Notes: a model not told the origin generated them from the sequence alone. A DNA stretch of 64,000 nt from Haliotis cracherodii (GCF_022045235.1 NW_027266341.1:56358001-56422000); one strand, 5' to 3'; shown: positions 1,330 to 64,000, numbered from the stretch's first letter. Numbers and translations are program-made.

Positions 1330-1458
1330 TTACGCAACTGATCACACATTCTCTTATATGATGGGGTCACGTGATACATATGTAGCGGTGAAACTAAGGG
1401 GTAAAGATCAAGCTAAGGAGGTATATATGAAGGCAGCACCACAGTGATGGTATCAGTC
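1330..1458 (+). promoter_or_regulatory. Gene 1 proximal promoter (bZIP-like site, E-box, TATA, Inr)
   Basis: TTACGCAA 1330-1337, TCACGTGA 1367-1374, TATA 1422, TCAGTC 1453; all conserved upstream of gene 2. Confidence 0.7.
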
Positions 1459-1498
1459 ATCTCAACACTGGTGTATCGTCTAGTCAAGTCTGTTCATC

Positions 1499-1504
1499 AT
1501 GAAG
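1499..1504 (+). CDS. Gene 1 coding micro-exon (Met-Lys)
   Basis: catcATGAAG|gtaaga donor at 1505; TATATAT at 1422, Inr-like TCAGTC at 1453-1458; splices in phase 0 to 2304. Confidence 0.88.
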
Positions 1505-2303
1505 GTAAGATACCATCAACCGATATAGTCATATTAACATCTTGTCTCTCAGTCAAGTTTGATGTGTTTCAATACACGACACTATTTGTCCTAATTGAAT
1601 TAATTTCAATTCTTAACTAAAACTACTTGTCACAATTTTACTGTTTAGTGGATGTGTGTATGTTGTAGCATTTCAATTTTACATGTATACATTTTCTTCT
1701 CTATCGTTTTCAAATATTACTGCGATGCACTACGGTTACTGCAGAACGTATGACAACTCTGTAATTGTAAATATACACACATATTGTAGCTTTTCAGAAA
1801 AGAGAGAATTAAAACTTTCACTTCAAATTGGACCCCCAATCTAAAAATGTACATTGGACTTGTCTATCAACTGTTTTATTTTACTTGAGTAGCATTAGTA
1901 ATTTCTCAAATGCACATACATGAATATAACGAGTACACTAATACCAGTTGAAAATACATAACACTGGTTACAGGTTATTTTTCTCTTGGCGGCATAAAAA
2001 AACTGGATTGGTGTCTTTGTCCCAAGAGGGTAAATGTTTAGATCGTTGTGTGTCAATCTTCTATCATTCTGTCGTTGAAACCTTGAACATGTGTTGGTCT
2101 GTGCAAAGAAACCGACAAAGAATATAACCGTTAAAGAGTGAGCGAGTTATAATGGAGGCTCACACCGTCATTAATTCTATATTTTGACCATGCAGAAACG
2201 ATGATAGGGATATTGTTAATGTGACCATCTACATTTGAATAAAGGTGTTTAAAGTTTCAAATTTTCAGCTCTAATGTATTTCTAATGTATTTCTTACATT
2301 CAG

Positions 2304-3104
2304 GCCATCATCGCTGCTTTGTCCGTGCTAGTAGCTTCTGCCTGGGCACAGGTGCCCTTCGGAACTGGATCCTTTGGAGTTGGCACTGTCGGTGTTGCTG
2401 GTACAGGCTATGGTTACAACCCATACAACAAGAACCATGGTTACAACAACTATGGCTACGGTATAGGCGTTGGGAAAGTCGTCGTTGCCGGTCCCTTCGT
2501 TGCTGGCCATGGAGTTGGTCTTGTAGGACACGGACCTTTCGTTGGTCATGCTGGTTCATTCGCAGGAAACGGACCCTTTGTTGCTGGAAAGGGACACGGT
2601 TATGGCTACAACACCTACAATGGAGTAGGGAATGGAGTTGGTCTTGTAAGAAAAGGTCTCCTTGGACACACCGGACACGGCCTCGCAGGGCCTATCGCAG
2701 CCGGACACGGTGTTGCCGGTCAGGGACATGGATACGGCTACAACCCCTACAACAACAACTACGGCTACGGTAAGAACGTCGGACATGGAGCTGGTCTTGT
2801 AGGAAATGGATTAACTGGACATGGACCTTTCGTCGGACACGGAGTTACCGGACACGGCCTCTCGGGACCTATCGCAGCCGGACACGGTGTTGCCGGTCAG
2901 GGACATGGTAACGGCTACAACCCCTACAACAGCAACTACGGCTACGGTAAGAACGTCGGACATGGAGCTGGTCTTGTAGGAAATGGATTTGCTGGACATG
3001 GACCTTTCGTCGGACACGGCGTTTATGGACATGGTGGACCCTTTGTTGGTCATGGAGTTGCTGGGTCCTTCGTCGGCAAAGCCAGTCCCTATTATTACAA
3101 CTAG
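2304..3104 (+). CDS. Gene 1 main exon: secreted Gly/His/Tyr-rich structural protein, 268 aa; join(1499..1504,2304..3104)
   Basis: ttcttacattcag acceptor. Spliced N-terminus MKAIIAALSVLVASAWA|QVPF reads as a signal peptide. GHG, GPFV and GYGYNPYNNNYGYGK modules; ends ASPYYYN; AATAAA 3182-3187. Confidence 0.92.
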   Translation, partial: AIIAALSVLVASAWAQVPFGTGSFGVGTVGVAGTGYGYNPYNKNHGYNNYGYGIGVGKVVVAGPFVAGHGVGLVGHGPFVGHAGSFAGNGPFVAGKGHGYGYNTYNGVGNGVGLVRKGLLGHTGHGLAGPIAAGHGVAGQGHGYGYNPYNNNYGYGKNVGHGAGLVGNGLTGHGPFVGHGVTGHGLSGPIAAGHGVAGQGHGNGYNPYNSNYGYGKNVGHGAGLVGNGFAGHGPFVGHGVYGHGGPFVGHGVAGSFVGKASPYYYN

Positions 3105-3257
3105 AGGCGTATGCTTGTTATGCCTGATGTATGAGTGTTTTTGTACTTTATTGATATTTTTGTATCAATTAACGAATGGGCAATAAATCTGTATTATTAA
3201 ATGATTGTGTATATTTTGGTCGTTGTATTACATGTAACGAATATTGTATAGAAATTG

Positions 3258-3641
3258 TCCCCTGGCCGCGTCATGCCAGAAGACTTTAAAAGTTACGCTG
3301 ATAAAACAAGGACTGGTCGGTTCAGAGTCAGTAAAATATTTCTGAGTGGGTATTCATGTTAAACTGTGGCATGATATCTCAGCGGGCTAGCACTATGAAA
3401 TCGGCATCAGTCAGGACTAGTACAAGTAGCCACACACACACACTTCTTCGCTTCTAATACCACATTCGCCCTGATTACGTTTCTATCTTTGTCAACACCG
3501 TACCTCGATCTATTGGTTGGTTTCAATAAAGTGGTAAACGTCTGAGACCTGCATCACTTCAGGCGTTCTTCCACATCAAGCTGACACGCCGAGACATAAC
3601 AGAAATACTTTTCAATGCGGTATTTAACTCACTCACTCACT
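3258..3641 (+). mobile_element. Truncated SINE family A fragment followed by SINE family B 3' fragment
   Basis: Matches the body of the full copy at 62842-63193 and the 3' half of the copy at 59440-59720; ends in (TCAC)n. Confidence 0.7.
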
Positions 3642-3809: not shown

Positions 3810-5035
3810 AGATATTGTTCAGATACTTCTGTTGCTTTTTGCTAATTATATAGTTCTGTTCTATAGTACGATAAAAGGTTTACAGAATTTTGATAGGTCA
3901 ACTGGAGCTGTACTGTCCTAATTGTAAACTCCAAGTGAACACCGAGAAAATGAAAGTGTTAGTTTTTAAAAAAGGGGAATAACCTATCAAGTAGGGGGAA
4001 ATGGTTCTTCAGCTCACAACCGTTTCAAATTGTCACTTCTTATAAATATCTTGGAGTAACCTTCACAGGCAGATTATCGTGGAATTACCACACCAATAAT
4101 ACAGCAATGCAGACAAAAAAAAGATACTAAAGGGAATCTTACATAGTTCAAAACCTTTCCCTGATGTTTTATATGAAACCTTTTTTTCTAAATATTTGAT
4201 ACAACAATTTCTCCAATATTTTTTTATTGAGCAGAGGTCTGGGGTCATACTGAATACAGAACTATTGAACTGGTCCATCTACATGCTTGTAAACCCTTCC
4301 TTGGCATAAAAACTGTACATCGGGTGTTGTCAACGTTTACCACTTTACATATTTCAACATATTAGAATTCCCAAGTATTGGTTCAAGATTCTTAAAATGC
4401 CTATTGACAGATTACCTAGAAAAGGTTATAATATTTTGTTATTGTATATAAAACATGGAATCCGCAACTAGGTATATGATGTAAAGTCGTTATTAAATGA
4501 ATGCGGCTGTGGGTATGTTTGGCATAATTAATGTGTACCTAACAATCCAGATTCGTTTTTAGTACCTATACGCCAAAGGATTAAGGATATATACTTACAA
4601 AAATGGTCATCGCATGTTTTAAGGTCAGAAAAATGCAATTATTACAAGCTTTTTAGGACAACTATTTACCCAGAATACTGTTTATTTGATATCAATTTTA
4701 AAAGATGTAGAATAAGTATAGCACAATTTAGATGCAGCTCCCGGATAATTGAGAATATGTGAGCAATGCGGTTTAAATGTGATTGAAGATGAGTTTTATT
4801 TTCTGTTAGTTTGTCCAAAATACGACCACCTAAGAAGAAAATATATGCCTTTTTATGTACATCCCACTCAACAACAAAATATATCGATCATGTCAACAAT
4901 TGATAAAAATACTCAATGTTCATTTATCATGCAATGTCAATTAGAATATGACCTGTTAAACGGATGTGTAACCACCCCGAAAACAGAATTGTACTGTGGG
5001 CCTGAGGCCTTTCAGTATGGAATAAAACTTATTCT
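3810..5035 (+). mobile_element. Degenerate non-LTR retrotransposon (LINE) ORF2 3' part
   Basis: Frameshifted remnants VNTEKMKVLVFKKG and YKYLGV (late RT region), and CEQC..EDEFYFLLVCPKY (zinc-knuckle-like C-terminus); ends near AATAAA. Confidence 0.75.
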
Positions 5036-5901
5036 TAACCCTCACTATAACCAGTTGCATTTGTAAAAACACTGCATTTTGTAACCAATAGTTGTGCATG
5101 TCATTATTTCTAAATACCTACCGACGATGATTAAGGAAGAAATATGTTTCTATCAATATACATTTGTATGCTTCCGCGGTGATGCGGACGTTAATCAGCT
5201 GTTTATCCGTATTAGCACGGTTTAAATATCAAGTAACACAACCAAGCGTGAGCCAATTTCAAGTCGTGCGAGGGAGTGAATTGGCAATACATCACCATTC
5301 AAGTAATATCAAGGCGGGGACAAGAAGCTTCAGGTATTGTACTCACACAAACAAGTGACTGAAAACATAAGCAAAGTCCATGTTACCTGGCATGATGACT
5401 CGCAATCAGCCAAACAGTGCATGACCACCCGATATTTTTTATATAATGAATTCGACTCTTACGACAGATACTGGGGATATTTTCTACCCGGAATAGCCGC
5501 GAGGTCCCTGTTATATAAAACGTCGACATATGTGTCAGTCATACGACAGGCCGACGGAAACAACGTTTTGGGATTACGGAAATATTATCTCGACCGTAAA
5601 CGCACAATACATATACAGTCAACTTTGATATGTCGAATTCATGGTTTTCTCGCAGTAAAAAATATGATCACTGCATATTCCTTCTTTATTTATCATTTTC
5701 AGTTGTGTCGAACCTAGCTCATAACATTTATGTAGGTCCCTTCACCTTCGACACTTCGACACAACGCTGTTTGACTGCATGTATGCCCTATCTACCTTGC
5801 ACAAACAATCCTACTTCTGGAATATCTCTTTTATTATAGTTGGTACCCTTTTAAAAGGACGTAGACCACAAACGTTACTATGTTTCTATTTAATATCTCG
5901 A

Positions 5902-7588: not shown

Positions 7589-9494
7589 CATGTTGCCTCC
7601 AGTTGGTATTGGAACCACCCATGTAAAAACAAATAAATAAATTGTCTTGTTTTTATTTGCAAACATTTTTTAAAATTTGAATATGGATTAGGATTGGCGT
7701 GGGGCCAATGGCCAGCAGTTGCTGGCAAGTAGCACCCTAGCTGTGTTGCAGATCTAGAATCTATATCAAATAATTCATTCGTATGCAATTAAGTGAAGGC
7801 TTAGATATAACTAAAGTTCAGTTAAAGGTCAAACTCAACCCTTGAAAGTATCAAACTTGTGTGTGAAAAAACTGAATAGGTTTATTGGTGTCAAGTATGA
7901 TATTGGTAGTTACTTTGGTTGGTTGAACCCTATTCCAGCCTCCAGTGTTATCTTGCCACCTATATTGATCGGGAGTTTGGAGTAACTATCGCTTGTGCAG
8001 ATTATGAAAAGTTAGAAATGTCAAGACTGTATCTTAATGTTATTGTTAAAACCAAGTTCTATATATCAAAATCGTGACGAGTTTTTATATATCACAACTT
8101 TCACCCAGAAAGTCTGAAAATGACATTAACTGCCTGGCAGAAAAAAATATACTCCCTTGTTTGATGGTGGCTAAATATGACACAAAAAATGTTTATTCAT
8201 TGCTTCACTGTTGATAACCTTATAGGAGTAGATGCTTCATTCTTGATATTATTGTTGATGTTGATGTTGATGTTTTGTATGTTCGACTTTACTTAGGTTA
8301 ATGTGACTTGAGACTAAACAGTTTGTGGTCATTCTTTTCATGAAAAGCAATTAGGACACTTCTAACATGTTTATCACACTTTTATTGTTAAATGTATGTG
8401 TGTATGTTGAGTCATTTGAATTTTGCATGCATGCATTATATATAATTAAATTTTTCTTCTGTGTCGTGTTACTGCGACTGTCATCGTGAACTACACGCAC
8501 TACGGATACTGCAAAACGGATGGCAATACTATAATTGTAAATGTTTACAATAACGCAATTGATTTTTATACACACCTATTGTAGCCTTTTAAAAAGAGAA
8601 TATTAACACCTTCACTTCACCTTTGGATCTCCAATCTAAAAACCCACATTGAACTTGTCACTCAACTGTTTTATTTTAATTTCTCACACGAATATACATG
8701 AATAACACGAACACATGAATAGCAGTTGAAAATACATAACAATGAGTTATTTCTTTCTTGCCAGCATAAAAAAACTAGATTGGCGTCTTTGTCCCAAGAG
8801 GATACATATTTGGATCGTTGTGTGTCAATCTTCTTTCATTCTGTCGTGGAAGCCCTGAACGTGTGTTGGCTGTGCAAGAAAAGCGTAATGCAAGGTCTGA
8901 GCAGACGCTGCAAAAGAAATTATGGCGTTGGAACCTACGATACATGTGTCTAGCTATGTCAGGGAATGTGTGGATTTCGCTTATGACGATACAGGTGTAT
9001 GAAGCATTTGAAATTGACGCCTCTTATCCCCTGTCTTACATAATATATGTATCTATGTATGTAATGATCCCTCAACATCTTAAGACTACTACAATCATAG
9101 TTCTGATTAGCATGCCTATCTTTCCGCTAAAGGGAGATATGACAGTAAACAAAGCGAATATAACTGAATTATGGCTAAAACAAATATTGAAATATTTTAT
9201 TAGTGTTAAAAAAAATATCATATATATTTGTCAATAAAATCAAAATCATGTCGGCAGACTCAAAATGAGAGGTATTGTTGCAGCTGAATTCTGATGAATG
9301 GCACAACGAACGTTGAGTTACGCAACTGTTCACATATTCGCTTAAACGATGGGGTCACGTGATACATATGTAGCGATATAACTAAGGGGTAAAGATCACG
9401 TGACCCTTCTGAGGATGTATATAAGGAGGCAGCACCACTGTTGTAGTATCAGTCATCTGAACACTGGTATAACGTCTAGTCAAGTCTGTTCATC

Positions 9495-9500
9495 ATGAAG
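9495..9500 (+). CDS. Gene 2 coding micro-exon (Met-Lys)
   Basis: catcATGAAG|gtaaga; TATATAA 9418-9424, TCAGTC 9449-9454, TCACGTGA at 9355 and 9396. Confidence 0.88.
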
Positions 9501-10671
9501 GTAAGATACCATTATACTGATACAGTCATACACACATCTAATGTAGTCTTTCGTTCAAGTTTGAAGCGTTTAAATACACGACACTGTTTGTTTTAATTCA
9601 ATTAATTTCAAAGTTTAACCAAAAATAGTTGTCTAACTGGGGGAGGATAATTAAGTATCCTAAGGTAAACCAAAGCAAGAGGCAGCACAGATGTGATTTT
9701 CAGTGATGTAGGTTGGTTAAACTTATGACAAGGAAAGAAAAGGAAAACCTGTAACAATCAATTGATTTGTATTTGATGTACAATGAAATCTCCAGAATCT
9801 GTATACAGTTTTGATTAAGGAATCATGGGATTGGCATAATATGACTTTGTTTACATCTAAGGGACCCACCTTATATTCTACAACCATCTTATATTAGTAG
9901 TTTGGATGGGGGGTGAGGGGGGTGTCTGGGATTTTGGTCAGAGATAGGATCTATTTTGGGAATTGGCTTAAAATGCGAATCTTCTCCGTGAAAACAATAT
10001 TTTTAGGACATCTAGCAAGTTTGGCGAACCCCTTTATCTATTTTAGTAAAACCTGATGAACCGATCATGTTTTTTTCGGGAAACAATTGTGTGTTAAAAA
10101 ACCCGAACGGATACAACCATGTTTGATGGCAGCTAAAAAGGAAACAAAAAAGGAATGGTTAATCGACGGTGGTTTATTTGATACGCGTATGATAGTTTTG
10201 TTTTGGACTTCACGTTTGCAGTGTTTCGGCGACTGTTTGAAGCCTAGTAACGTTTGATTAATGTTTGTAATTTTTTGTCAAATCCAATTTTTGATGGTAT
10301 CCTTTCATTTGGTCTGCATTGTGTTATGATATTAGTTACTAAGATCGAGGATGCTAAGTTCACATATTGGGTGCATTTGCTTACAAAGGGGTAAACAATG
10401 GGACAAAACACTTTCCATAATCGAATAGAAATATCTGCATAAAGCAGAATCGAATGTACAATTCCGATAATATGAATTTATAATTCGTGCTAAATCACAG
10501 CTCTTATGTATAACCGACACAAGTTATAATCGAAACTCACATCGTCATTAATTAATCCATATTGTGACCATGTGGAAACGATGTTATGGATGTAGTTATT
10601 TTGACTATCTACATTTGCGTGACGGTGTTTAAAGTTTCAAATTTTCACCATAATGTAATTCTTATATTCAG

Positions 10672-11283
10672 GGAGTCATCGCTGCGTTGTCTGTGCTAGT
10701 CGCTTCTGCCTGGGCACAGGTGCCCTTCGGAACTCGATCTTTCGGAGTCGGCACTGTCGGTGTTGCTGGTACAGGCTATGGCTACAACCCATACAACAGC
10801 AACCATGGTTACAACAACTATGGCTACGGTAAAGGCGTTGGGAAAGTCGGTGTTGCCGGTCCCTTCGTTGCTGGACATGGAGTTGGTCTTGTAGGACACG
10901 GACCTTTCGTTGGTCATTCTGGTTCATTCGCAGGAAACGGACCTTTCGTTGCTGGAAAGGGACACGGCTACGGCTACAACTCCTACAATGGAGTTGGTCT
11001 TGTAGGAAATGGACTCCTTGGACGCAACGGACACGGCCTCGCAGGACCCCTCGCAGTCGGACACGGTGTTGCAGGTCAGGGACATGGCTATGGTTACAAC
11101 CCCTACAACAACAACTACGGCTACGTTAAGAACGTCGGACATGGAGCTGGTCTTGTAGGAAATGGATTTGCTGGGCATGAACCTTTCGTCGGACACGGCG
11201 TTTATGGACATGGTGGAGCTTTTGTTGGTCATGGAGTTGCTGGGTCCTTCGTCGGCAAAGCCAGTCCCTATTACTACCACTAG
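10672..11283 (+). CDS. Gene 2 main exon: secreted Gly/His/Tyr-rich protein, 205 aa, recent paralog of gene 1; join(9495..9500,10672..11283)
   Basis: cttatattcag acceptor; MKGVIAALSVLVASAWA|QVPF; near-identical to gene 1 but lacks a 59-aa duplication and one NGVG; AATAAA 11363-11368. Confidence 0.92.
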   Translation, partial: GVIAALSVLVASAWAQVPFGTRSFGVGTVGVAGTGYGYNPYNSNHGYNNYGYGKGVGKVGVAGPFVAGHGVGLVGHGPFVGHSGSFAGNGPFVAGKGHGYGYNSYNGVGLVGNGLLGRNGHGLAGPLAVGHGVAGQGHGYGYNPYNNNYGYVKNVGHGAGLVGNGFAGHEPFVGHGVYGHGGAFVGHGVAGSFVGKASPYYYH

Positions 11284-11456
11284 GGACCTACGCTTGTGAT
11301 GCCTGATGTATGAATGTTTTTGTACTTTATTGATATGTTTTTGTATCGATTAACGAATGGGCAATAAATCTGACGTTACATACTTGTTGTATTATTCAAT
11401 CATTCTGTTTACTTTGGTCGTTGTATTACACGTAACGAATTTTGTATAGAAATTGT

Positions 11457-28626: not shown

Positions 28627-28632
28627 CTTCAT
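28627..28632 (-). CDS. Gene 4 coding micro-exon (Met-Lys)
   Basis: Minus strand aaaATGAAG|gtaatt; TATAAGG 28714-28708; promoter homologous to gene 3. Confidence 0.87.
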
Positions 28633-30896: not shown

Positions 30897-30902
30897 ATGA
30901 AG
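30897..30902 (+). CDS. Gene 5 coding micro-exon (Met-Lys)
   Basis: agtcATGAAG|gtaagt; TATATAAA 30832-30839. Confidence 0.88.
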
Positions 30903-31089
30903 GTAAGTTTCATTCTAATGTGTGGATATTATACATATTCTAAAAGTCTTTTCAACTTTATTTGTAAGATATTCAAACGATATACACGATGGTAAATGGG
31001 GTAAACGAAGATGCAAGGTGTTTGTGTGGTTATATGGAATTAATCAGGACACAAATATATAATCACTTGACCGGTTTACTTATGACCAG

Positions 31090-37174: not shown

Positions 37175-37669
37175 CACACACGTACAAAACACACTTAACA
37201 CACACTCACCAAACACAACATACACTCAGCACACACACAACACACAATACACACACTCACACAACACACACTCAACACACACACAACACACACTCACCAA
37301 ACACAACACACACAACACAAACTCAACACACACAACACACTCAACACACACACACTTAGCACACACACAACATACACTCAACACACACACAACACTCAAC
37401 ACATACAACACACACTTACACACACAACAGACACACTCAACACACACAAAACACACTCAACACACACAACACAAACTCAACACACACACTCAACATACAC
37501 ACACAGCACACACACACGCAGCGCACATAAGACACACTCAACATATAACACTTAACACACACTCAACACACACAACAAACACACATACTCAACACACAAC
37601 GCACACTCAACACACACACACAACACACCACTCAACACACAACACACGCTCAACACAAACACACACGCG

Positions 37670-37700
<31 letters not shown>

Positions 37701-37701
37701 A
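37175..37701. repeat. Long compound CA-rich microsatellite
   Basis: Interspersed ACAC and CTCAACAC units ending in (GC)n(AC)n. Confidence 0.95.
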
Positions 37702-39726: not shown

Positions 39727-39732
39727 ATGAAG
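39727..39732 (+). CDS. Gene 6 coding micro-exon (Met-Lys)
   Basis: caggATGAAG|gtaagc; TATAAA 39668-39673. Confidence 0.86.
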
Positions 39733-42580: not shown

Positions 42581-43212
42581 ATCTATGGTAATCTCTGGAT
42601 TTCAGTTCGGGATGACAAACCATTGTACAAACTCATTCTTGGGCCGAGTGGTGAAAAGTGGACCATCTCCAGTATGATACAGAAACACATTGTGGATTTA
42701 AATATGATGTATATCTGAAGGCAATGTCTGAGCAACGCAACTGTTGTATTCCTATAGATAGCGATATATCCTGTAAATTGCATCAGGTGGCTTAAATCAC
42801 GTCTTAAACTGTCCATGTTTTGCTGGAACCTCGTATTTTCATTCTCTGAGTTTTGGTTTTATACTTTGTGTGGTTGGTCAACATACCGGTGTGTATCTTT
42901 GATGTTTTGTACACCTCACGTCTAAACAATAAATTTCTACAATATTCGTTGTTTTCCTGTGCGACATTGTCATCAGTTGTGTGAGTGAGTGTGGTTTTAT
43001 TTCACTTTTAAGCAATAACACGGTGGGAGAAAACCAGAAATGGGCATCACCATTTGTACCCATGTGAGGAATCGAACCCGTCCACTCGGCTTGACGACCC
43101 AAAGTTTTAAACATCGATCTTCCCCATCACAAATTTCACCATGAAAATAGAGAACATACAAATTGGTATAAATGAATAATAATTCTGAAAAAAATAGGAA
43201 GTAACTTTATGA

Positions 43213-46801: not shown

Positions 46802-46833
<32 letters not shown>

Positions 46834-47370: not shown

Positions 47371-48072
47371 CGTACACTAGTGTCACTGCTATAGTCATTC
47401 AAGCACATTAATTGGTAGTTGAATAGATGTGGATGAATTGGTAGTTGAATAGATGTGGATGAATTAGGAAATAACAACGCAACAATGACATATTCAATTA
47501 CTTATACACCGATTACATATACTAAACACCAAATATAATCTGAATCATGTTGGCCATGGTCAGCTTATCAAAATAAAATAAAACGCCTTTGTCGGGAAAT
47601 CTAAGCGACGTCACAGATAATCATAGACCATTCAAAGCCATAACATTAGAGAGACAATTTACCTGTTATTCCATTGTTACGTAACACAGAGACAGTGTAC
47701 CTTTGAAAGAAGACTACCCCCGAAAAGCTCCAATCCCCACCCAGCGGCACGCCATTGATCCCCAGGGGCCCTATGTTATAAGGCATCGTCCGTGACTGAC
47801 CAGGACACCCACGCTGTAATTATCAGTGACTGGTGACTTGAAGACGCCGACCATCACGACATGCTGATATTACCTTACAAATAATGCGGTTGTCAATACT
47901 ACAGTTGGACTATGAAAGTGTCAGTACTGTTTCCTTATGTTAATAGAATTATGTTAGATAGCAGTAAAGTTTAACTGTCCAGGTAAAGTATATATAATGA
48001 ATGTCGAGGCTGGGGGAGACCAACGTGGGTCGCTGAAACATTTACCGTTTTGCTACATCTACACACGGCAAC

Positions 48073-48078
48073 ATGAGG
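48073..48078 (+). CDS. Gene 7 coding micro-exon (Met-Arg)
   Basis: caacATGAGG|gtgagt consensus donor; TATATATAA 47989-47997 lies 84 nt upstream, similar to the sister genes (59-82 nt). The intron contains an N-gap, so the join is inferred. Confidence 0.75.
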
Positions 48079-48182
48079 GTGAGTTTGCTGTTACATTTTT
48101 TACAATTAAAATGTCTTCTATTTTCGCGAACACCAGGTATTATTACAAAATGCAAAAAGCAGCAAAGATGGTCTGGATTATC

Positions 48183-48415
48183 NNNNNNNNNNNNNNNNNN
48201 NNNNNNNNNNNNNNNNNNNNNNNNNNNNNNNNNNNNNNNNNNNNNNNNNNNNNNNNNNNNNNNNNNNNNNNNNNNNNNNNNNNNNNNNNNNNNNNNNNNN
48301 NNNNNNNNNNNNNNNNNNNNNNNNNNNNNNNNNNNNNNNNNNNNNNNNNNNNNNNNNNNNNNNNNNNNNNNNNNNNNNNNNNNNNNNNNNNNNNNNNNNN
48401 NNNNNNNNNNNNNNN
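48183..48415. other. Assembly gap (N run)
   Basis: N bases. Confidence 1.
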
Positions 48416-49947
48416 ATCTTGAGATTAATGAAGCAAGGTTTAATATCAGGAGTTAATCTGTGCCACGTTTCCCCGTAGGCTGTGTGTTCATGTACAATAC
48501 ATATGACTTGGGACATCGTGGTAATGGATGCTTGATATTATTTGACGTTGTTTTGTGATAATTTGGGGTTCAGGTCGTCACTTTGGGTGTTACTTATATT
48601 ATACATCTGTATGTTTCTGATCCATCAATCAGTCGAGAATATTTCTTGAATTTATTCCAAGTATGTAAATCTTATTCGTTGACTTTCGAGAGAATTATGC
48701 TCACATATTTCTACATGTCACCTTCTCGGGCTTCATATGACGATATAGATATAACTAGAGAAAATGTATACAGTTTGTCATTGAAACGGAACAGTTCTGT
48801 TATAGACGTGTCTTTTACTTTACAATGCGCATAGTTTCGCCGAGATAATGGTCTGCAGTTTCGTACATCGGTAAAGCGCTTGATGATATTAGTGATGTGG
48901 GCGGAAGGGTAGCCGAGTGGTTGGAGCTTTCTCCTCAGGAAAAAGGCCGAGTTCGATCTCCCATATGGGTAGAATGCGTAAAACCCATTTCTGGTGTCTC
49001 CCGACGTGACATTGCTGAACTATTGCTAACAGCGGCGGAAAACCATTCTCACTAACTCACTCGCTCACACGCACATAAGCGTTGCCATTTAACACATTAT
49101 CTTGTCGTGAAATCATATTGCGCTAAGAGCCGACCTCTTCCACTCTTTCAGTTGAAACTTATCATAGTCGTACAATCATCTTCCTATCAAGATAATCTTA
49201 TACAGTATATCTACGAAAAGTAAAATCCGGTTGTTGTCCATACAATTGTTTGTATAGTCTATATATTATAGACTATATATATTTTTATATTTATAACATA
49301 ATTTCTTTTTCTCACTCCTTTCTTTGTCCCATATCTATAGTTATTGAGCCTTAAAGTCAGATTGACCAATCAGAGAGCAGAACCACTAACCCCATATGAG
49401 CCCGTGTCCCGTCAGTCACATTTTGGATTTTCCAACACCCACCTCACATACTTCACATAAACATTCTGGTTCAGAAATTCGTTATTCGACACTTTTTTGT
49501 GTTTAGATACCATTAGTTTTGATGTTGAGGGCGTTAATACTTTTTTTAGATCACGTTCGTTGATAATGATTGTAGTTAAAATCAACAAGGTTTGGCCTCT
49601 AAGATTTGAAGAGTAGTCTCCCTTTGACCCTATAATACGTCAACGGTTGTAAGCGTCAAGTTTTCAGTTAGACATGACATATGCGATATAGATACCAGAC
49701 AGAGTAAACTTTCCGGCATAATAATTTCTTTATGGTGTCGTAGGTGCCGTATTCGGTGTCATATTAGGTTAGGCTGACGCCTCGCCCAATATCTTTCTGC
49801 TGCCGTACACTGCAACTAAAGACATCATAACCAACAATACCTGTATTGGTTACTTGTCTCAATTGTTATTTCACAAGTTAGGACACAATAACTTGTGGTC
49901 AGTCCACCCCATGTCAATATTACACACACGTGATATTTAGTCATTAA

Positions 49948-50248
49948 GTGAGTGAGTGAGTGAGTGAGTGAGTCAGTGAGTAGGGTTTAACGCCGCTTTT
50001 AACAATATTCTAGTTACATCGCGGCGTGTCAGCTTGATGTGGGAGAAAAAAACACAGAGTGATGCAGGTCTCATTCGTTAACCACTTCGGTGAAACCCAC
50101 GAGCACGGGTATGGTGCTGACAAACCTAAAAACATAATCGGGGCGAACCGGGATTCGAACCCACAATCACAGGTTTCTGGCGTGCGCAAGGACGCAACTC
50201 TGCACTGTGGATCGCGGCGCCTTAGACGACTGGGCCACCCGTGCCCCC
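49948..50248 (-). mobile_element. SINE family B (tRNA-Leu-like head), in gene 7 intron
   Basis: Head GGGGGCACGGGTGGCCCAGTCGTCTAAGGCGC...GGGTTCGAATCCC; (TCAC)n tail; tcattaag on both flanks. Confidence 0.87.
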
Positions 50249-50680
50249 TAATCATTAAGAGCCACGATGAAAGTAACTAAACACCTACAAAGCTTGCATT
50301 ATTATTACTATAACACTGAAGCAAAATGCAAAATGTTTAATTTTAAATTAATGCATTAACTATTAAAATAATGTATTATCTTTAAATGAGACTCGTTATG
50401 TTAAACCGATAATTTTAATTTATATCCCACAGGTCCTCACCCTCTACCTGTGTTTTCTTCCTGTGCCCCCTAATCATTAAGAGCCACGATGAAAGTAACT
50501 AAACACCTACAAAGCTTGCATTATTATTACTAGAACATTGAAGCAAAATGCAAAATGTTTAATTTTAAATTAATGCATTAACTATTAAAATAATGTATTA
50601 TCTTTAAATGAGACTCGTTATGTTAAACTGATAATTTTAATTTATATCCCACAGGTCCTCACCGTCTTCCTGTGTTTTCT
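50241..50680 (+). repeat. 222-bp tandem duplication covering the gene 7 splice acceptor
   Basis: Copies start at 50241 and 50463; acceptors tcccacag|GTCCTCACC at 50432/50433 and 50654/50655. Confidence 0.9.
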
Positions 50681-53114
50681 GGCCTACTCTTCCATCTTGG
50701 CAATGCCGTTTTCCATCGGGGGTATCGGACAAACACGATCAAGTGAACCTCACACTGACTCTGAAGACCTCAACAGGATATTCCCCGCGTCACAACGCTT
50801 CGGCAACGGCTTCGACTTTGGAAACTACGTCAGCAAAGCTGGGCCGGTATCAACCGGGTCAGGTAACCATGGTTACGGCACTCAGGTCGCCTCTAGGGGT
50901 TATGGTGATGATGTAAACTACAACGTCCAAAATGGACACGGTGATGACGTCCAGAACGACGGCGGTATCGAGGATCGCTACAACACCGCTCTACATGAGT
51001 TGGGTAACGGCTTTAACGACAAACAGGCCATCGGCAGCATCTACAACTTCGGGGACAACCAGCATGGAAAAGATGACGACTTTGGCGTTGAGGACCGCTA
51101 CAACAACGCGATTTTGACTGTGGCTAAACGACCGACTAGTAACGCTGCCAATAGCTACATTGAAGGCAAGTCCGACAACGATAATACCTATGGAAGTGAC
51201 GTCGACAAGCACATCAACGTTGATGGCAACCTGGGGAACAGGTTCAACACTATCCCTGTTGTGTCTGGGTTCGGACAAGGACCTCGATACGGCTCTCAGG
51301 ACGTTCTTGGAAAACAGACTGACAAGGGATTCCTTCACTCTGATCTCCATCACGTCTCTCCCCATGTCGCCTCTGACGTCGCAGGCAACAGCCATGGCAC
51401 TGGTGCTGCATTGAAAGACTCGCATTCCCTTGGTCACACCTACTCTTCCGTTAATGCTCCCAATTCAGCTGATAAGACTTACCAGTCCCTAAACGCACCC
51501 CATTCTGTTGATAACACTTACCAGTCCAAAAGTGCACCCCATTCTCTTGACAACACTTACCAGGCGATAAATGCTCCCCATTCTGGTGCTAACACTTACC
51601 AGTCCATAAATGCTCCCCATTCTGGTGCTAAAACTTACCAATCCATAAATGTACCCCATTCTAGTACTAACACTCACCAGTCTTTAAATGCACCCCATTC
51701 TCTTGATAACACTTTTCAGTCCCCAAATGCACCCCATTCTAGTGCTAACACTTACCAGTCCATAAATGCTCCCCATTCTGGTGCTAACGCTTACCAGTCC
51801 ATAAATGCACCCCATTCTACGGACAGCACTTACCAGTCCCTAAATGCACCCCATTCTAGTGCTAACACTTACCAGTCTATAAATGCACCCCATTCTAGTG
51901 TAAACACTCAGCAGTCTTTAAATGCACCCCATTCTCTTGACAACACTTACCAGTCCCTAAATGCACCCCATTCTGGTGCTAACACTTACCAGTCCCTGAA
52001 TGTACCCCATTCTAGTGTTAACACTCAGCAGTCTTTAAATGCACCCCATTCCAGTGTTAACACTCAGCAGTCTTTAAATGCACCCCATTCTCTTGATAAC
52101 ACTTACCAGTCCATAAATGCACCCCATTCTGGTGCTAACACTTACCAGTCCATAAATGCACCCCATTCTGGTGCTAACACTTACCAGTCCCTGAATGTAC
52201 CCCATTCTGGTGCTAACACTTACCAGTCCCTGAATGTACCCCATTCCAGTGTTAACACTCAGCAGTCTTTAAATGCACCCCATTCTCTTGATAACACTTA
52301 CCAGTCCCTAAATGCACCCCATTCTGGTGCTAACACTTACCAGTCCATAAATGCACCCCATTCTGGTGCTAACACTTACCAGTCCCTGAATGTACCCCAT
52401 TCCAGTGTTAACACTCAGCAGTCTTTAAATGCACCCCATCCTCTTGATAACACTCACCAGTCCCTAAATGCACCCCATTCTCTTGACAACACTTACCAGT
52501 CCATAAATGCACCCCATTCTAGTGCTAACGCTTACCAGTCTGTACCATCACCCCATTCTGTTGATAACGCTTACTCCTCCGTAAATGAACCCCATCATTT
52601 TGGCAACACCTCCCCAAACGGTATTGCAGTCAAACTGTTTGCCAACTCACACCCGACCAAAGACACTCACAACACTGTTGACGCTTTCCCAACCAACGGT
52701 CTATCCAAATTTACTGATCATAGCTCCTTCCCCGTCAAGAGTTCACCATACACCTACCCCTCAGAAAATTCACTTCCACCAACTGGTACCTCCTTCACAC
52801 CCAACCATCCAAAGATAGAAAATTCCCCTTTCTTTGGCCATGGTCACAGCGCCAACCCTTCAAAAAGTACTCCCAAAGATAACACTAATTTCTACCCCTT
52901 TGCCAATGTCCCACACTCGATCGGTCACTCTGACATAACTCGTCCAGTCGGTAATTCTGGTTCTCCAATCGACAGAGCTGTTCCTCATCCCCTTGCTGGA
53001 CACAACAGCTTCAATAACATCAACATCAACGACTTCGGCATAGACAACGTCGCTCAGAACAAAGTCGGCCATGCATCCCATCATGGACTCGGCTCTGGCG
53101 TTTCACGACCGTGA
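50655..53114 (+). CDS. Gene 7 main exon: secreted His/Ser/Asn/Pro-rich protein with about 30 tandem 13-mers (NTYQSINAPHSGA-type), 821 aa; join(48073..48078,50655..53114)
   Basis: Spliced N-terminus MRVLTVFLCFLAYSSILA|MP is signal-like; Asp/Gly/Asn-rich N-region; 39-nt array about 51435-52598; AATAAA 53329-53334. Confidence 0.9.
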   Translation, partial: VLTVFLCFLAYSSILAMPFSIGGIGQTRSSEPHTDSEDLNRIFPASQRFGNGFDFGNYVSKAGPVSTGSGNHGYGTQVASRGYGDDVNYNVQNGHGDDVQNDGGIEDRYNTALHELGNGFNDKQAIGSIYNFGDNQHGKDDDFGVEDRYNNAILTVAKRPTSNAANSYIEGKSDNDNTYGSDVDKHINVDGNLGNRFNTIPVVSGFGQGPRYGSQDVLGKQTDKGFLHSDLHHVSPHVASDVAGNSHGTGAALKDSHSLGHTYSSVNAPNSADKTYQSLNAPHSVDNTYQSKSAPHSLDNTYQAINAPHSGANTYQSINAPHSGAKTYQSINVPHSSTNTHQSLNAPHSLDNTFQSPNAPHSSANTYQSINAPHSGANAYQSINAPHSTDSTYQSLNAPHSSANTYQSINAPHSSVNTQQSLNAPHSLDNTYQSLNAPHSGANTYQSLNVPHSSVNTQQSLNAPHSSVNTQQSLNAPHSLDNTYQSINAPHSGANTYQSINAPHSGANTYQSLNVPHSGANTYQSLNVPHSSVNTQQSLNAPHSLDNTYQSLNAPHSGANTYQSINAPHSGANTYQSLNVPHSSVNTQQSLNAPHPLDNTHQSLNAPHSLDNTYQSINAPHSSANAYQSVPSPHSVDNAYSSVNEPHHFGNTSPNGIAVKLFANSHPTKDTHNTVDAFPTNGLSKFTDHSSFPVKSSPYTYPSENSLPPTGTSFTPNHPKIENSPFFGHGHSANPSKSTPKDNTNFYPFANVPHSIGHSDITRPVGNSGSPIDRAVPHPLAGHNSFNNININDFGIDNVAQNKVGHASHHGLGSGVSRP

Positions 53115-53461
53115 ATGTCCGATGTGCTCCATATATTATTTTTCTAACTACAGTTAACTTAGTCCAGCGTAGACGTACAATATAAGCTATTTTGAGTGAA
53201 CGAGCACATTTTGAAATTAAGAATGTCAAACCAAACCTGTTTTGTGAATGCAATTGTTTGTATGTTAACACACTCGTGATTGTCTTGTAAATTTATTTGT
53301 ATTATCCTTGTTGTTTCATCGTCTTCAAAATAAAAAAAATGTGTACTGGAAAGCGTTTTCTGTTTTGCTACATCTCTTAGAAGCTCATGTGTCATTTTAA
53401 GATTGCTGGAAGCGGCGCAAAGCAATACTCACTCACAAGCATGTCTTGCTTCAATGGCATG

Positions 53462-58512: not shown

Positions 58513-58790
58513 CTCAAGAACTTCGACATTCAATGTCAAACATCCCTTCTTGAGAACTTCGACATTCAATGTCAACCATCTCATCTTTAGAACTTCCACA
58601 TTCAATCCCAGACATCTCATCTTGAGAAGTTCGACATTCAATCCCAGACATCTCATCTTGAGAAGTTCGACATTCAATCCCAGACATCTCAACTTGAGAA
58701 CTTCGACATGCAATGTCAGGCATCTCATCTTGACAAGTTCGACATTCAATGTCAGGCATCTCATCTTGAGAAGTTCGACATTCAATGTCA
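58513..58790. repeat. 36-bp minisatellite, about 8 copies
   Basis: Unit GAGAAGTTCGACATTCAATGTCAGGCATCTCATCTT, head-to-tail with no spacers. Confidence 0.92.
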
Positions 58791-59720: not shown

Positions 59721-60504
59721 TGTTAATCATGCACATAAATTGTTCTTATTTTCACCCTACACCAACTATACATAATTCTGCACCATGCTCCCGCTATCAA
59801 GTCTTGCCTTGACGACTGTATAAGGATACGTACCGAAAAGTCGCTATAATAGTGCAATAACGGTAAAGGAACAAGTACGTAGCTCTGAAATGTCGTCTCA
59901 AAGAATAAAAGAAGTTATTATCCATAAAAAGTGTTATGTGATTATGCTCTTCCACCCCCAAAACCCTGTCAAAGACGATAAAAATGTTGCTTTCCATAAC
60001 GTCTGTCTACATTGTCATCTGTCATCTTCTAAAAGAGTCCATCAAACAATTGATTTGAGCATCTTCTGTGAACATTAAATCAATATTAACAAAGTTTCAC
60101 TGTACCGAACGCTTTACTCAAACTGATTATTCAAACTGCAGGGTAGATGTGTCTACTTACACACTGATGGATGGGATGGTGTAGATGATTAACGCAGCAA
60201 GAATGCAGTATCTGTGATTATAAAACAGTTATATGTAAATAAAATGTAGAAATATGTCGTGACTCAGTCCTCCCGTTGGTCAGGTCGGGCGTGAGCAGGT
60301 GGCGCCACGTGGTCTCCCGTGGAGAGGAATCACCATGCAATGACCAGTTTGTACTTGACACACAATGTCTTCATGGGAGTTGCCATCTGCTGATTGCGTA
60401 GCAATAGGTGCTAAGTGTGATACACACTATGCTATAAATGCTGGTACTACTGTTAATGAAACAGTTGTGCAGAGAGTTGCGAGAGTGGCACAGGCTGATC
60501 AAAC

Positions 60505-60510
60505 ATGAAG
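60505..60510 (+). CDS. Gene 8 coding micro-exon (Met-Lys)
   Basis: aaacATGAAG|gtaggt; TATAAA 60433-60438; CCACGTGG 60305-60312. Confidence 0.85.
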
Positions 60511-60562
60511 GTAGGTACTTGGGATTGGGTGATTCTTTAAACATGAACATTTGAATAGTGTT

Positions 60563-61412
60563 TTACTGTACTAGTCCGGAGTAATGCCGAGTTTATAGTG
60601 TTTATAGTGCTAGCCACTGAGTACTCATTCCGAGCCGACCAGTTCCTGTTTTCGCCTCTCAATGCTGAGAGCCAGGCAGGTAACAATAAGTACCAACTTT
60701 TAACGTCTTTTGGTAGAACGCGGCCGGGGATCGAACCCCCGACCTTCCGCTTACCGGGAAGATGCTCTACCACTAGACCACGGAGACGGTCTCAAGTATA
60801 TAAGTAAAGTGGAAATAAAGCATACAGGTAGTGCCAGAAAGCTGCTGTTGCGAATGCATTGTCAATGATGTTATGAAGACAATTTGGATGATCCAAAGGA
60901 GGTATTATTATTCCTTATTATGGTGAGGCGAGGTGGCATGAAATGAGATGTGTCGTCGAATTCAAGATTATTATTATATTGCGNNNNNNNNNNNNNNNNN
61001 NNNNNNNNNNNNNNNNNNNNNNNNNNNNNNNNNNNNNNNNNNNNNNNNNNNNNNNNNNNNNNNNNNNNNNNNNNNNNNNNNNNNNNNNNNNNNNNNNNNN
61101 NNNNNNNNNNNNNNNNNNNNNNNNNNNNNNNNNNNNNNNNNNNNNNNNNNNNNNNNNNNNNNNATGACAGTTTTATAGTGCAAGCCAACAGAGATACAAT
61201 GCCAAATATTAACATGACGGAAACCACTCTTAGACACAGAATACTGATTCCGAGCCGACTACTCCTTATCATATCCTCTTAATCCCGAGCGCCAGACAGG
61301 GAAACAACAAGTACTATCTTTTAACGTCTTTTGAAATGACGCTTCCGGGAATCGAACCCAGGACCTTTCGCTCTCCAGACAGACGTACTATCTACTAGGC
61401 ACGGAGCCAATC
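60563..61412 (-). mobile_element. Two diverged family A SINEs in gene 8 intron (60563-60792; 60921-61412 spanning the gap)
   Basis: Reverse-complement matches to the family A head and body. Confidence 0.75.
60984..61163. other. Assembly gap (N run)
   Basis: N bases. Confidence 1.
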
Positions 61413-61602
61413 CCAAATATGGAACCATATAGAAATGGTACCGCCCAATAACATCACATGAAGGGATTAATGTTAATACCTTTCCATTGGGATTTCAGAG
61501 CAAGTGACCAGTTATAACCATCTTTTTTGTAACATATATAGGCTTGTTAACACTGCTTCATCATTAAGTATATTATCATAAACAGACCCCGTTTATTTCC
61601 AG

Positions 61603-62199
61603 GTGGCGTTCTTGTGTTTGTCGTTGGTGACACTGTGGGCGATGTCTGTGAGTGAAGACGCTGCCAAGGCGACTGTGGTCGAGCCCCAGCAGATCGGCGC
61701 CATTGTAGCCTATGACGTTCCCGGTAACCAAGTTATCTATCGCCCACCTACTACATTCTACAAACCAGGGATCTCCGACCTGAAGAGCGTCGGTGGGGTG
61801 AAAGGTCTACTGAGTCTCGGCCTCCATACGAGTCAATATAGACCCCCTGGCACCGGGCACCGTTACAGAGAGTACCTTCCTGCAACGCACGGTCGGAACC
61901 AATATGGTCAAAACCTGGCCAATCAGAATCCTTATGACAAGAATCAATTTGATCAGCGACCTTACTTCTCGCGCGGCCCAATACCCTACAGCTCCGGGCA
62001 GAGGTACCACAGAGCCATGGGGAACTCCTTCAGTGGGAACCCGACTTCTTTGGGAGGTACCCTTTTTCCTCAACGTCCTCTGAACAACTACAAACCCAGC
62101 TACGTTCTCTACAAGCCAGGCGTGAAGGATCTGAAGAGATATGGAGGCATCGAAGGCCTTCTTCGTCTAGGGCTACCCTCTATCTTGCGCAATCACTGA
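61603..62199 (+). CDS. Gene 8 main exon: secreted Pro/Gly/Tyr-rich basic protein with a duplicated 29-aa motif, 200 aa; join(60505..60510,61603..62199)
   Basis: tttatttccag acceptor; MKVAFLCLSLVTLWAMSVS signal-like; AATAAA 62330-62335. Confidence 0.88.
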   Translation: MAFLCLSLVTLWAMSVSEDAAKATVVEPQQIGAIVAYDVPGNQVIYRPPTTFYKPGISDLKSVGGVKGLLSLGLHTSQYRPPGTGHRYREYLPATHGRNQYGQNLANQNPYDKNQFDQRPYFSRGPIPYSSGQRYHRAMGNSFSGNPTSLGGTLFPQRPLNNYKPSYVLYKPGVKDLKRYGGIEGLLRLGLPSILRNH

Positions 62200-62841
62200 A
62201 ATTGTTCAAATACAGTACACCTAATATAAAGCAGGCGCAACTAACTCGACAAAAATCGAACGATTTTTTTGTCTGTCATGTGGAAAAGCTATTGAGGCGT
62301 TTGTGTAACTACATTGAGCATGTTTGGTCAATAAACTATCAGCATTCAATGTATGCTCTTTTGTTTTTAATAAGGGCTTGGCCCTAGGTGCTTAGGGGTG
62401 GAAAAAAATCTGAAGTCACCAGCAACATCTCCTAAGAAACATACATGTCTAATGTTGAACTACTATAAAAGCGCCACTGAAAACCTCTAAAATTAACCAT
62501 TTCGACATATACCAGATTTCTACATATACTAGATTTCGACACAAACTCTCACATATGCATGTCGAAGAAGTAACTCGTATCAGATGTTATTCCGTCGTTC
62601 CTTTCTGTAACGTTACAGTTTACATGCGAAAGAGGAACGTTGCTTTCTTTTTAGAAAAGAATAAAACCGGCCACGACGACATAATTCTTATTCCAAGAAG
62701 CATATTTATTACTCGTCAAAAGTTCTTGCTAACTGAATGACTGATCACCGTTCGTAGAAACCCATACAAGTCGGCTGTTTGTCTGTACGGATGATATGAC
62801 GTTAATTTCTTTGTGAGACATTTTGAAGTTGTTCTAAGTAT

Positions 62842-63193
62842 GGACCGCCTCCGTGGTCTAGTGGTAGAGCGTCCGCCCGGAGACCGGAAGGTCTGGGGTT
62901 CGATCCCCGATCGCGTCATACCAAAAGACGTTAAAAGATGGTACTTGTTGTTACCCTGTCTGGCCCTCGACATTAAGGGTATAAAACAAGGACTGGTCGG
63001 CTCGGAGTCAGTATACTGTGTCTGAGTGGGGTATTCATGTTAAACTGCGGCATGGTATCTCAGTGAGCTAGAACTATAAATGGGCATCAGTCCGGACTAG
63101 TACAAGCAGCCACACAAACACACACACGTACATGCACGTCGCTATATAAGTGCAATAATCTTGGACGCGACGTTAAACCCCATTTCACCTCAC
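62842..63193 (+). mobile_element. Full-length SINE family A with TSD
   Basis: TTGTTCTAAGTAT(GGA) at 62829 and 63194; A-box TGGTCTAGTGG, B-box GGTTCGATCCC. Confidence 0.93.
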
Positions 63194-63894
63194 TTGTTCT
63201 AAGTATGGATATGATATATGGATGAATAACGTCTTTATTAGAATTAGGACTAACGTTTCGGTGTAGGTTTTAACTTGCTTGATAACGTTATTAGAACCTA
63301 CATCGAAACGTCGCTCCTAATTGTAATACAGAAGTTGTACATCCATATATCTTATCCTTACTCATGACGTTACTTGTCGCGTTACAAATTAGTCACCATG
63401 GCGGACACAATATAAAATTATATAAATGTGGGAAAAGCCATCCCCTGAAGATAAGTCTTTGTTATTTGTGAACTCGAGGTAAATGCATATATGGGGTTGT
63501 ATACCATGAGTCCGAGCTCATACATGAGACCCGCGACATTGATACAGTCATTGCATTTCTATCTTTTACTTATGAAATCCTACAGGAGACACTGTCGAGA
63601 TAAGTTTGTCGCACTGTCGCTGTTACAAAATCTAGTGAAAAGGAAAAAATTTACCAAGGCGAATTGTTTTGAATATTATCTTTGGTCTTTTTTTACCACC
63701 GACGGAGAACGCGACAACGCACTGGCGGCCAATAGAAACTTTACCACTTTAAAGAAATGAAATTGTAAAAATGTAAAAACACAAGTTCAGACTAAATCAA
63801 TGCAATAAACATAGTCCAAACACAACAATGCTTTATGCAGAGGTGATACACGTCAACGGCACGTATATTTGTAGAAAATGCTAAAAAGTGAAAA

Positions 63895-64000
63895 ACACGT
63901 GCCGCTTAAGCAGCCGAAACTACGTGTGCAATAAGGGTATATAAATGAAACTGACGGCATGTCAGTCACTCACACTGATAAAGAATCATCACAGAAATGC
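63895..64000 (+). promoter_or_regulatory. Probable promoter, 5' UTR and start codon of a ninth cluster gene
   Basis: CACGTG near 63896, TATATAAA 63938-63945, TCAGTC 63962-63967, ATG 63997-63999 at the window edge. Confidence 0.6.

Follow-up and report, generated by a model that had tools for sequence, protein, structure and literature searches.

A stretch of 64,000 nucleotides (nt) from the abalone Haliotis cracherodii (hereafter the window; contig C78, 56358001-56422000) holds eight real genes of two exons each. Their products are predicted to be secreted and are probably disordered; all are Cys-free and most are basic. Secretion is read here from the sequence and disorder from the composition. 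Judging from the DNA on both sides, the genes belong to an abalone-only complex of 24 or more members that extends over about 190 kb or more, with the window as its downstream third. Most probably the products serve as building blocks for a cross-linked protein material outside the cells. A preliminary description of the window had proposed a multi-component kit for a hardened structure. The part of that proposal that stands is the set of real genes for predicted secreted, Cys-free, low-complexity proteins; the kit, the structure it would serve, and its chemistry are what we infer from them.

Eight genes on a common layout

A six-frame listing of open reading frames, together with Tandem Repeats Finder, gives eight long open frames of extreme composition in the window. 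The intervening DNA is AT-rich and contains many repeats resembling short and long interspersed nuclear elements (SINE- and LINE-like repeats) as well as microsatellites. None of the eight frames has a usable ATG plus signal peptide at its own start. All of the eight genes previously drawn were found where they had been placed. The genes, the precursor starts (a slash separates the residues of the two-codon exon from those that follow), and the two assembly gaps are:

1422-3190, plus strand: gene 1; TATA box 1422; ATG AAG 1499-1504, then GT; exon 2 2304-3104 (open frame 2319-3104); precursor 268 residues, mature chain 250; start MK/AIIAALSVLVASAWAQ-VPFG
9418-11370, plus strand: gene 2; ATG AAG 9495-9500; exon 2 10672-11283 (open frame 10687-11283); precursor 205 residues
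18750-20700, minus strand: gene 3; TATA box about 20697; ATG AAG 20616-20611; exon 2 19839-18820 (open frame 18820-19989); precursor 341 residues; start, as in gene 4, MK/VVVAALSVLVCSAIAQ-VPLS
26900-28720, minus strand: gene 4; TATA box about 28714; ATG AAG 28632-28627; exon 2 27982-26984 (open frame 26984-28051); precursor 334 residues
30832-33380, plus strand: gene 5; ATG AAG 30897-30902; exon 2 31963-33270 (open frame 31951-33270); precursor 437 residues; start MK/AIVAVLSVLVCSGLAQ-VPVI
39668-42935, plus strand: gene 6; ATG AAG 39727-39732; exon 2 41618-42580 (open frame 41585-42580); precursor 322 residues; start MK/IVVVLTALCATALG-EIPLL
47989-53335, plus strand: gene 7; exon 2 50655-53114 (open frame 50697-53114); mature chain 803 residues; start M(R/K)/VLTVFLCFLAYSSILA-MPFS
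48183-48415: assembly gap, in the first intron of gene 7 if exon 1 lies at 48073, otherwise 5' of gene 7
60433-62335, plus strand: gene 8; ATG AAG 60505-60510; exon 2 61603-62199 (open frame 61603-62199); precursor 200 residues; start MK/VAFLCLSLVTLWAMSVS-EDAAK
60984-61163: assembly gap, in the first intron of gene 8, between the donor at 60510 and the acceptor at 61603

The layout is common to all eight genes: a TATA box precedes a first exon whose last codons are ATG-AAG (in gene 7, ATG-AGG), and a phase-0 intron separates this exon from a single long one. The TATA box lies 59-84 nt 5' of the two-codon coding start, which reads ATG AAG followed by GT, or ATG AGG followed by GT at the favoured start of gene 7. 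Each of the eight genes has an in-frame phase-0 AG acceptor directly 5' of the hydrophobic core of the signal peptide, and the hydrophobic stretch ends at a predicted cleavage-type site with small residues. Exon 2 is uninterrupted throughout and holds the rest of the signal peptide and the chain; a polyadenylation signal (AATAAA or ATTAAA) follows 66-348 nt 3' of the stop codon. Annotated homologues in H. rufescens and H. asinina start with MKA, MKV, MKF, or MKL, and thus agree with the model of a two-codon MK exon. Both assembly gaps are noncoding: no gene model reads through a gap, no coding frame crosses one, and the apparent frames that cross them are runs of X.

The mature chains of all eight genes contain no Cys, no Trp, and at most one Met, Cys being confined to the signal peptides. 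Chain masses range from 18 to 85 kDa, and the isoelectric point (pI) lies between 8.8 and 11.1 in seven of the eight. The compositions bear out the four dissimilar chemistries described as sitting side by side, namely those of genes 1-5, gene 6, gene 7, and gene 8. The further claim that each gene encodes a signal peptide and a repetitive chain without Cys holds as regards predicted secretion and the lack of Cys, but gene 8 (20 kDa, pI 9.9; Gly 12, Pro 10, Leu 9, Tyr 8%) has only a mild bias and is hardly repetitive.

Genes 1-5 are assigned to a single Gly/His/Tyr/Asn family by their common signal peptide and N-terminus. The chains of genes 1-4 have masses of 18-30 kDa, a pI of 9.4-9.8, about 3% Lys plus Arg, and almost no acidic residues (Gly 30-35, Val 11-13, Tyr 5-10, Asn 6-9, His 6.6-8, Ala 7-9%); over genes 1-5, Gly ranges from 30 to 47% and His from 6.6 to 9.1%, with Lys plus Arg again about 3%. 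His lies nearly always within GHG, of which there are 10-35 triads per chain, and Tyr lies mostly in GYG, GYN, or NYG, with GYG the commonest context in genes 1-4. Gene 3 represents a subgroup with GHS/GPFAAGHGVAG repeats, and gene 4 is its sister. Gene 5 (Gly 47%, His 9%) is joined to the others by signal peptide and N-terminus; in its chain a 12-residue unit, GGHGLAGQGGFV, is repeated about 29 times.

Members of this family are under purifying selection: the ratio of nonsynonymous to synonymous substitution rates (dN/dS) is 0.25 for gene 1 versus gene 2 and 0.52 for gene 3 versus gene 4 in the chosen frame, in both cases below 1. Sequencing run X6, from a related abalone, covers exon, intron, and intergenic DNA at genes 4 and 5 evenly and is therefore a DNA run. 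Both of the two indels listed for it in the exon of gene 4 are 3 nt long, and nine of the ten listed in the intron and intergenic DNA around that gene are not multiples of three.

The promoters of genes 1-4 contain an E-box-like element, GGTCAYGTGAC, 98-188 nt 5' of the ATG (1366-1373, 9354-9361, 9397-9404, and, on the minus strand, the regions of 20804 and 28819). Five of the six CAYGTGAC sites in the window are in these promoters; gene 8 has one CACGTG at -199. The element may be a control element of the basic helix-loop-helix type. It was rejected as proof of co-regulation, being limited to genes 1-4, which are kin by descent, and to the single CACGTG of gene 8. Intron 1 of gene 5 contains a SINE-like element (31089-31405) whose summed depth reaches hundred thousands to millions in four of four runs. 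In run X6, a contig of 3983 nt from the related abalone skips it, which suggests a young insertion that differs between species.

Gene 6 (Tyr 17, Asn 15, Lys 11, Pro 9.5, Asp 8.5%) is built of units of 16 or 19 residues (periods of 48 or 57 nt) such as DHKPNSYNNYDYKPQGYNN. It has 16 Tyr-Lys or Lys-Tyr pairs as well as YKP units. Over the signal peptide and the first 40 residues it can be loosely aligned with the family of genes 1-5, a weak hint that the chemistries may have arisen by repeat replacement on a common scaffold.

Gene 7 (85 kDa, pI 6.2; Ser 14, Asn 12, His 7, Pro 8%) has a non-repetitive N-terminal part of 235 residues, then 28 units of NAPHSxxNTYQS(L/I), and then a His/Pro/Ser/Asn tail. 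Pro and His are invariant in the 13-residue unit, and N, S, N, T, Q, and S are nearly so. Its frame of 841 codons is the sole long open frame at its place. Two candidates were found for its first exon. One is ATG AGG at 48073-48078, followed by GTGAGT and preceded by a TATA box 84 nt upstream. The other is ATG AAA at 50489, followed by GTAACT; it has no TATA box and lies within a 222-bp tandem duplication. The candidate at 48073 is favoured over that at 50489. The duplication (50241-50680, 97% identical) copies the end of the intron, the acceptor, and the first ~35 bases of exon 2, and creates a decoy acceptor and a decoy ATG AAA with its GT 166 nt upstream of the real acceptor. The gap at 48183-48415 begins 105 nt past the favoured donor and lies 2.2 kb before the acceptor.

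Gene 8 carries the motif YKPG(I/V)xDLKxxGGxxGLLxLGL near both ends of its chain. Two tRNA-derived SINE-like copies in the same orientation (60600-60790 and 61165-61410) flank the gap in its intron, and these probably caused the assembly break.

Other open frames in the window arise from repeats. Those of a 36-nt satellite of 7.6 copies (58517-58790), which run on both strands, are spurious, as are those of a long, impure (AC)n tract (37174-37701); neither tract is a gene. The frames at 4749-5066 (plus strand) and 14132-14497 (minus strand) have in common the motif FLLVCPKY / YLIICPAY ... LR(R)KY and look like 3' fragments of one retrotransposon family.

An abalone-only complex and its relatives

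The complex extends on both sides of the window, as read over 120 kb upstream and 60 kb downstream. A genome search with gene 1 gave 32 matches, all of them within 56.27-56.39 Mb of the same contig and none elsewhere. Upstream, at 56260726-56352264, lie 15 further members of the family of genes 1-5, many of which end in KASPYYYH; the array of this family comprises at least 20 genes and occurs at this locus only. Two other features outside the window are:

C78:56247238-56249847, plus strand: open frame of 870 codons with a signal-peptide-like start and an Ala/Lys/Asn/Gly/Asp-rich chain
C78:56436182-56437570, plus strand: paralogue of gene 8, 14 kb downstream of the window, with a signal-peptide-like start

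The 870-codon frame is taken as a further chemistry of the same complex; a partial frame like it is found at 56238002-56238826. The paralogue of gene 8 keeps the YKPG...GLLSLGLP motif, with one YYKPGLKSLSSVGGVYGLLSLGLPS motif, and continues in long QQPTYPAQPGYPQQPAPQAP-type repeats (QQPTYPAQPGY-type; Pro 18%, Gln 16%). Apart from this paralogue, gene 8 is single copy in the genome. The preliminary description had expected nine or more genes; the ninth is not in the window, but the downstream paralogue and at least 15 family genes upstream bear out the larger number. The complex may reach past the DNA that was read.

Gene 7 has flanks that are unique in the genome. The only matches of gene 6 to its own genome are of low identity, confined to the repeat part, and scattered over many contigs, and gene 7 likewise gave low-identity matches of its repeat part on many contigs. 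Both sets were rejected as paralogues and taken as compositional.

Outside this genome, each gene was searched by its exon 2. Gene 1 matched five Haliotis proteins only at E<=1e-3, among the 8000 scored candidates that shared most words with it. It is 69% identical to H. rufescens XP_046362886, named "shematrin-like protein 2"; its H. asinina homologues are named "chorion class A protein L11-like", "scale keratin-like", or "uncharacterized". These RefSeq names ("shematrin-like", "chorion class A-like", "scale keratin-like") mirror composition and not kinship. Gene 8 is closest to H. asinina XP_067660466 (60% identical), which is its sole true homologue in an exhaustive HMMER search of 1.8 billion representatives; a second match was rejected as a spurious repeat protein. 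Protein searches over proteins of 0.55-1.75 times the query length gave no homologue of gene 6 and none of the non-repetitive N-terminus of gene 7. The H. asinina proteins that resemble gene 8 (660466), genes 3 and 4 (660468), and the family (660476-83 and 660487) have neighbouring accession numbers on one contig of 102 Mb, and from this numbering we infer that the linkage is conserved.

Pfam gave no family at the gathering score, chitin-binding domains included, for genes 1, 3, 5, 6, and 8, and two sub-threshold chance matches only for gene 7. This result and the automatic RefSeq names agree with the earlier statement that the proteins belong to no named family. Neighbours in the ESM Atlas are arthropod Gly/Tyr cuticle proteins; their scores of 0.81-0.87 are below 0.9, and they were taken as compositional and as a lead only. 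Literature searches by characteristic peptide motifs, by the RefSeq names, and on radula or periostracum proteins of abalone found no paper that describes these proteins.

Expression and the material that the genes may supply

Evidence of expression comes from sequencing runs searched with words of exon 2 for gene 7, and from four runs over 26900-32899 for genes 4 and 5. Five small runs (X1-X5, two studies) contain 7-33% of the sampled words of gene 7 exon 2 (X1 0.33, X3 0.23, X5 0.07). The share is 37-39% in four larger runs and zero in three runs of the "same species label". In X1 and X3, which come from two studies, exon 2 of gene 4 is covered at a summed depth of about 50-900, and the intron and the 2-kb spacer at 0-7. 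These runs cover the exon and not the intron or intergenic DNA, and are therefore RNA-like. The match of a contig from X3 ends at 27984, two letters past the acceptor at 27982; these letters, AG, are also the end of exon 1. The contig has 39 more letters that do not match the intron of gene 4, with no joint listed. It is consistent with splicing at this acceptor, short of proof.

Gene 5 has weak contig cover in both X1 and X3, and run X10 lacks genes 4, 5, and 7 altogether. Genes 4, 5, and 7, which represent two chemistries, are thus jointly present in two independent RNA-like samples and jointly absent from a third. Such joint presence and absence is what shared, restricted expression would give, and lends partial support to co-expression.

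Signal peptides, lack of Cys, extreme contents of Gly, aromatic residues, and His, basic charge, an array, and restricted joint expression together fit bulk extracellular structural proteins. We tentatively place the material at the shell-forming mantle edge, either in the periostracum or in the organic framework of the shell's outer layers, and favour this site over the radula or jaw. The following mechanism is proposed. The chains would be exported in soluble form, and the Gly-His-Gly modules of genes 1-5, mixed with Val, Phe, and Leu, would condense as His loses its charge at the pH of seawater. Cross-linking would then take place through Gly-flanked Tyr (GYG, YGYGK), the Tyr-Lys pairs of gene 6, and histidines, catalysed by a secreted peroxidase or tyrosinase whose gene lies elsewhere in the genome. 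Unlike chemistries could serve different layers or properties.

The one architecture and the predicted signal peptides of all eight genes favour this reading, as do the dN/dS values below 1. A product made in bulk would be expected to show such an amplification as that of the family of genes 1-5, at this locus only. Among described gastropod proteins, those closest to the abalone chains are made by the mantle. For example, Lstag-sfc-6/7/8 of Lymnaea are secreted, basic, and rich in Gly, Tyr, Asn, and Leu, with Gly-flanked Tyr; they are expressed in a mantle belt beside a peroxidase zone, and were proposed as peroxidase substrates in sclerotisation of the periostracum type (PMC6007483). Has-tsfgr1 of H. 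asinina, a repeat protein of Gly, Leu, and Tyr, is expressed at the margin of the mantle's outer fold (PMC2034539).

Four points weigh against the mantle edge and its cross-linked material. Proteins rich in both His and Gly are known more from jaws and beaks than from shells. The expression evidence is that of genes 4, 5, and 7, from runs with coded labels. No tyrosinase, peroxidase, or chitin-related gene is linked to the locus; a tyrosinase cluster lies about 49 Mb off on the same contig, and peroxidases lie on other contigs. Finally, and mildly, the keyword passages of abalone shell proteome and mantle screen papers mention no such Gly/His/Tyr/Asn proteins. As regards the proteomes, chains with about 3% Lys plus Arg are easily missed in tryptic digests.

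The same kit could instead belong to the buccal apparatus, where it would impregnate and harden the chitinous teeth of the radula or the jaws in the manner of a squid beak: His would be deprotonated, the chains would condense into the chitin scaffold, and covalent cross-linking would follow. This site and its mechanism are possible but doubtful. The radula is renewed continuously, which would fit gene amplification, and genes 1-5 have their 10-35 GHG triads per chain and 7-9% His; the keyword passages of the mantle and shell papers, as said, do not mention the family. His acts as a pH switch in the squid HBP proteins, whose coacervates infiltrate chitin before cross-linking (PMC6884462), and the chiton radular-tooth protein RTMP1 is secreted and Gly-rich, with a His-rich region (PMC6351634). 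The tandem GHGxY modules that define HBPs are, however, absent from the abalone chains (0-1 per chain), Pfam gave no chitin-binding domain, the literature yielded no abalone radula or jaw data, and the keyword passages of a gastropod radula transcriptome paper name no such proteins. An egg coat is unlikely, since abalones spawn free eggs. A material limited to one stage (larval shell, larval operculum, or early post-settlement structures) and largely silent in adults is improbable. In its favour, the genes occur in some runs and are missing from others of the "same species label", the shares within one study differ threefold in a time-series-like manner (X3 0.23, X5 0.07), and the pattern of Has-tsfgr1 is stage-limited (PMC2034539). 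Against it, 20 or more genes in one array seem many for a larval structure of short life.

We give little weight to a material that is not hard, such as an adhesive, mucus, or Gly/His-rich antimicrobial polypeptides. The 16 Tyr-Lys or Lys-Tyr pairs and the YKP units of gene 6 recall mussel foot proteins, to which no homology of gene 6 was found in the protein search. Masses of 18-85 kDa, the lack of dibasic processing sites, and about 3% Lys plus Arg (genes 1-5) are unlike antimicrobial peptides, and hydrophobic, Val/Phe/Leu-rich Gly chains suit solids more than mucus. It is very improbable that any of the models, genes 6 and 7 above all, merely reflect frames left open by tandem repeats. Three frames are open in gene 6, neither gene gave a homologue in the searches described, and the first exon of gene 7 is a candidate. 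Both nevertheless match the confirmed genes in TATA box, two-codon exon, phase-0 acceptor, signal peptide, and polyadenylation signal; the 841-codon frame of gene 7 stands alone at its place, Pro and His do not vary in its repeat, and part of it is present in RNA-like runs.

In a more far-reaching interpretation, which we regard as unlikely, the locus would correspond, in a gastropod, to the chorion locus of silkmoths or the epidermal differentiation complex of vertebrates. Its 26 or more genes, spread over about 200 kb, would comprise five chemistries or more on one two-exon scaffold, generated by repeat replacement and switched on together, and would supply the full parts list of a non-mineralised radula or jaw hardened by His-switch condensation and then by Tyr/His cross-linking. 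If true, this would give the first molecular account of how the matrix of a gastropod radula or jaw is constructed. In the hard parts of molluscs, the secreted repetitive proteins that are restricted to single lineages are the main unknowns, and chains rich in His and Gly are in demand as templates for biomaterials that phase-separate. The roughly two dozen natural variants that share one scaffold here could reveal an origin by repeat replacement on a fixed signal-peptide exon, and could also show how several unlike chains combine into one material. The value of the complex hinges on finding the tissue.

Comparison with known systems

The chains of genes 1-4 resemble Lstag-sfc-6/7/8 in the predicted signal peptide, in pI (9.4-9.8), in low-complexity repeats rich in Gly, Tyr, and Asn, and in Gly-flanked Tyr; for genes 1-5 as a whole the likeness is one of described composition. 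The Lymnaea proteins contain YGYGK-type peptides like those of quinone-tanned proteins, with consensus sequences such as VGGYGYGK at one mismatch or less (PMC6007483). The core of this octapeptide, YGYGK, occurs 1-2 times in each of genes 1-5. In contrast to the Lymnaea proteins, the abalone chains have regular GHG modules (His 7-9%) and Val, Phe, and Pro. In situ data place Lstag-sfc in mantle zone 3, whereas the abalone genes are known here from sequence and runs, and for Lymnaea no gene complex of several chemistries has been described. Has-tsfgr1, compared by description, is likewise small, secreted, abalone-only, and repetitive in Gly, Tyr, and Leu, and is expressed at the shell field and mantle edge; it differs from genes 1-5 in its repeat, GGYGLGL, which has no His.

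Pinctada shematrins and KRMPs are similar in being lineage-restricted, rapidly evolving, secreted Gly/Tyr-rich repeat proteins of multigene families. Shematrins are reported from pearl oysters only (PMC5400390), and their members have a similar C-terminal motif ending in Tyr (PMC2034539). The mostly Tyr-rich C-termini of the abalone chains are PYYYN and PYYYH in genes 1 and 2, GNYY in gene 3, GHDY in gene 4, and VGRF in gene 5, with Tyr at the end in genes 3 and 4 only. Genes 1-5 were rejected as shematrins, because no homology was found (Haliotis-only matches among the 8000 scored), the chains have no common C-terminal motif, and shematrins are specific to pearl oysters.

Squid HBP-1 and HBP-2 share with genes 1-5 predicted secretion, a low Cys content, richness in Gly and His (30-47% and 6.6-9.1% in the abalone chains), disorder by composition, and hydrophobic modules like pentapeptides. 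By analogy, the Gly-flanked His of the abalone chains could act as a pH switch. Phase separation of HBPs needs at least four tandem GHGxY modules, or two GHGLY modules with GAGFA/GHGLH spacers (PMC6884462). With at most one GHGxY per chain despite their many GHG triads, genes 1-5 were rejected as HBPs. The abalone Tyr lies in a separate GYGYNPYN block, unlike that of the HBP modules.

Mussel foot protein 1 (Mfp-1) consists of tandem repeats of Tyr, Lys, and Pro, and abalones have no byssus. Gene 6 is like Mfp-1 in its predicted secreted, Cys-free tandem repeats with Tyr beside Lys and Pro (YKP). It differs in its unit of 16 or 19 residues, rich in Asn and Asp. The likeness to mussel foot proteins is one of repeat description.

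Homologues of these genes are already in RefSeq under automatic names, and the families themselves are new. Their kind is well known: the extracellular materials of molluscs include many repetitive secreted proteins that evolve fast, are restricted to one lineage, and are encoded by genes in tandem arrays. Less usual is that one complex combines at least five chemistries on one gene scaffold, for which joint expression has partial evidence.

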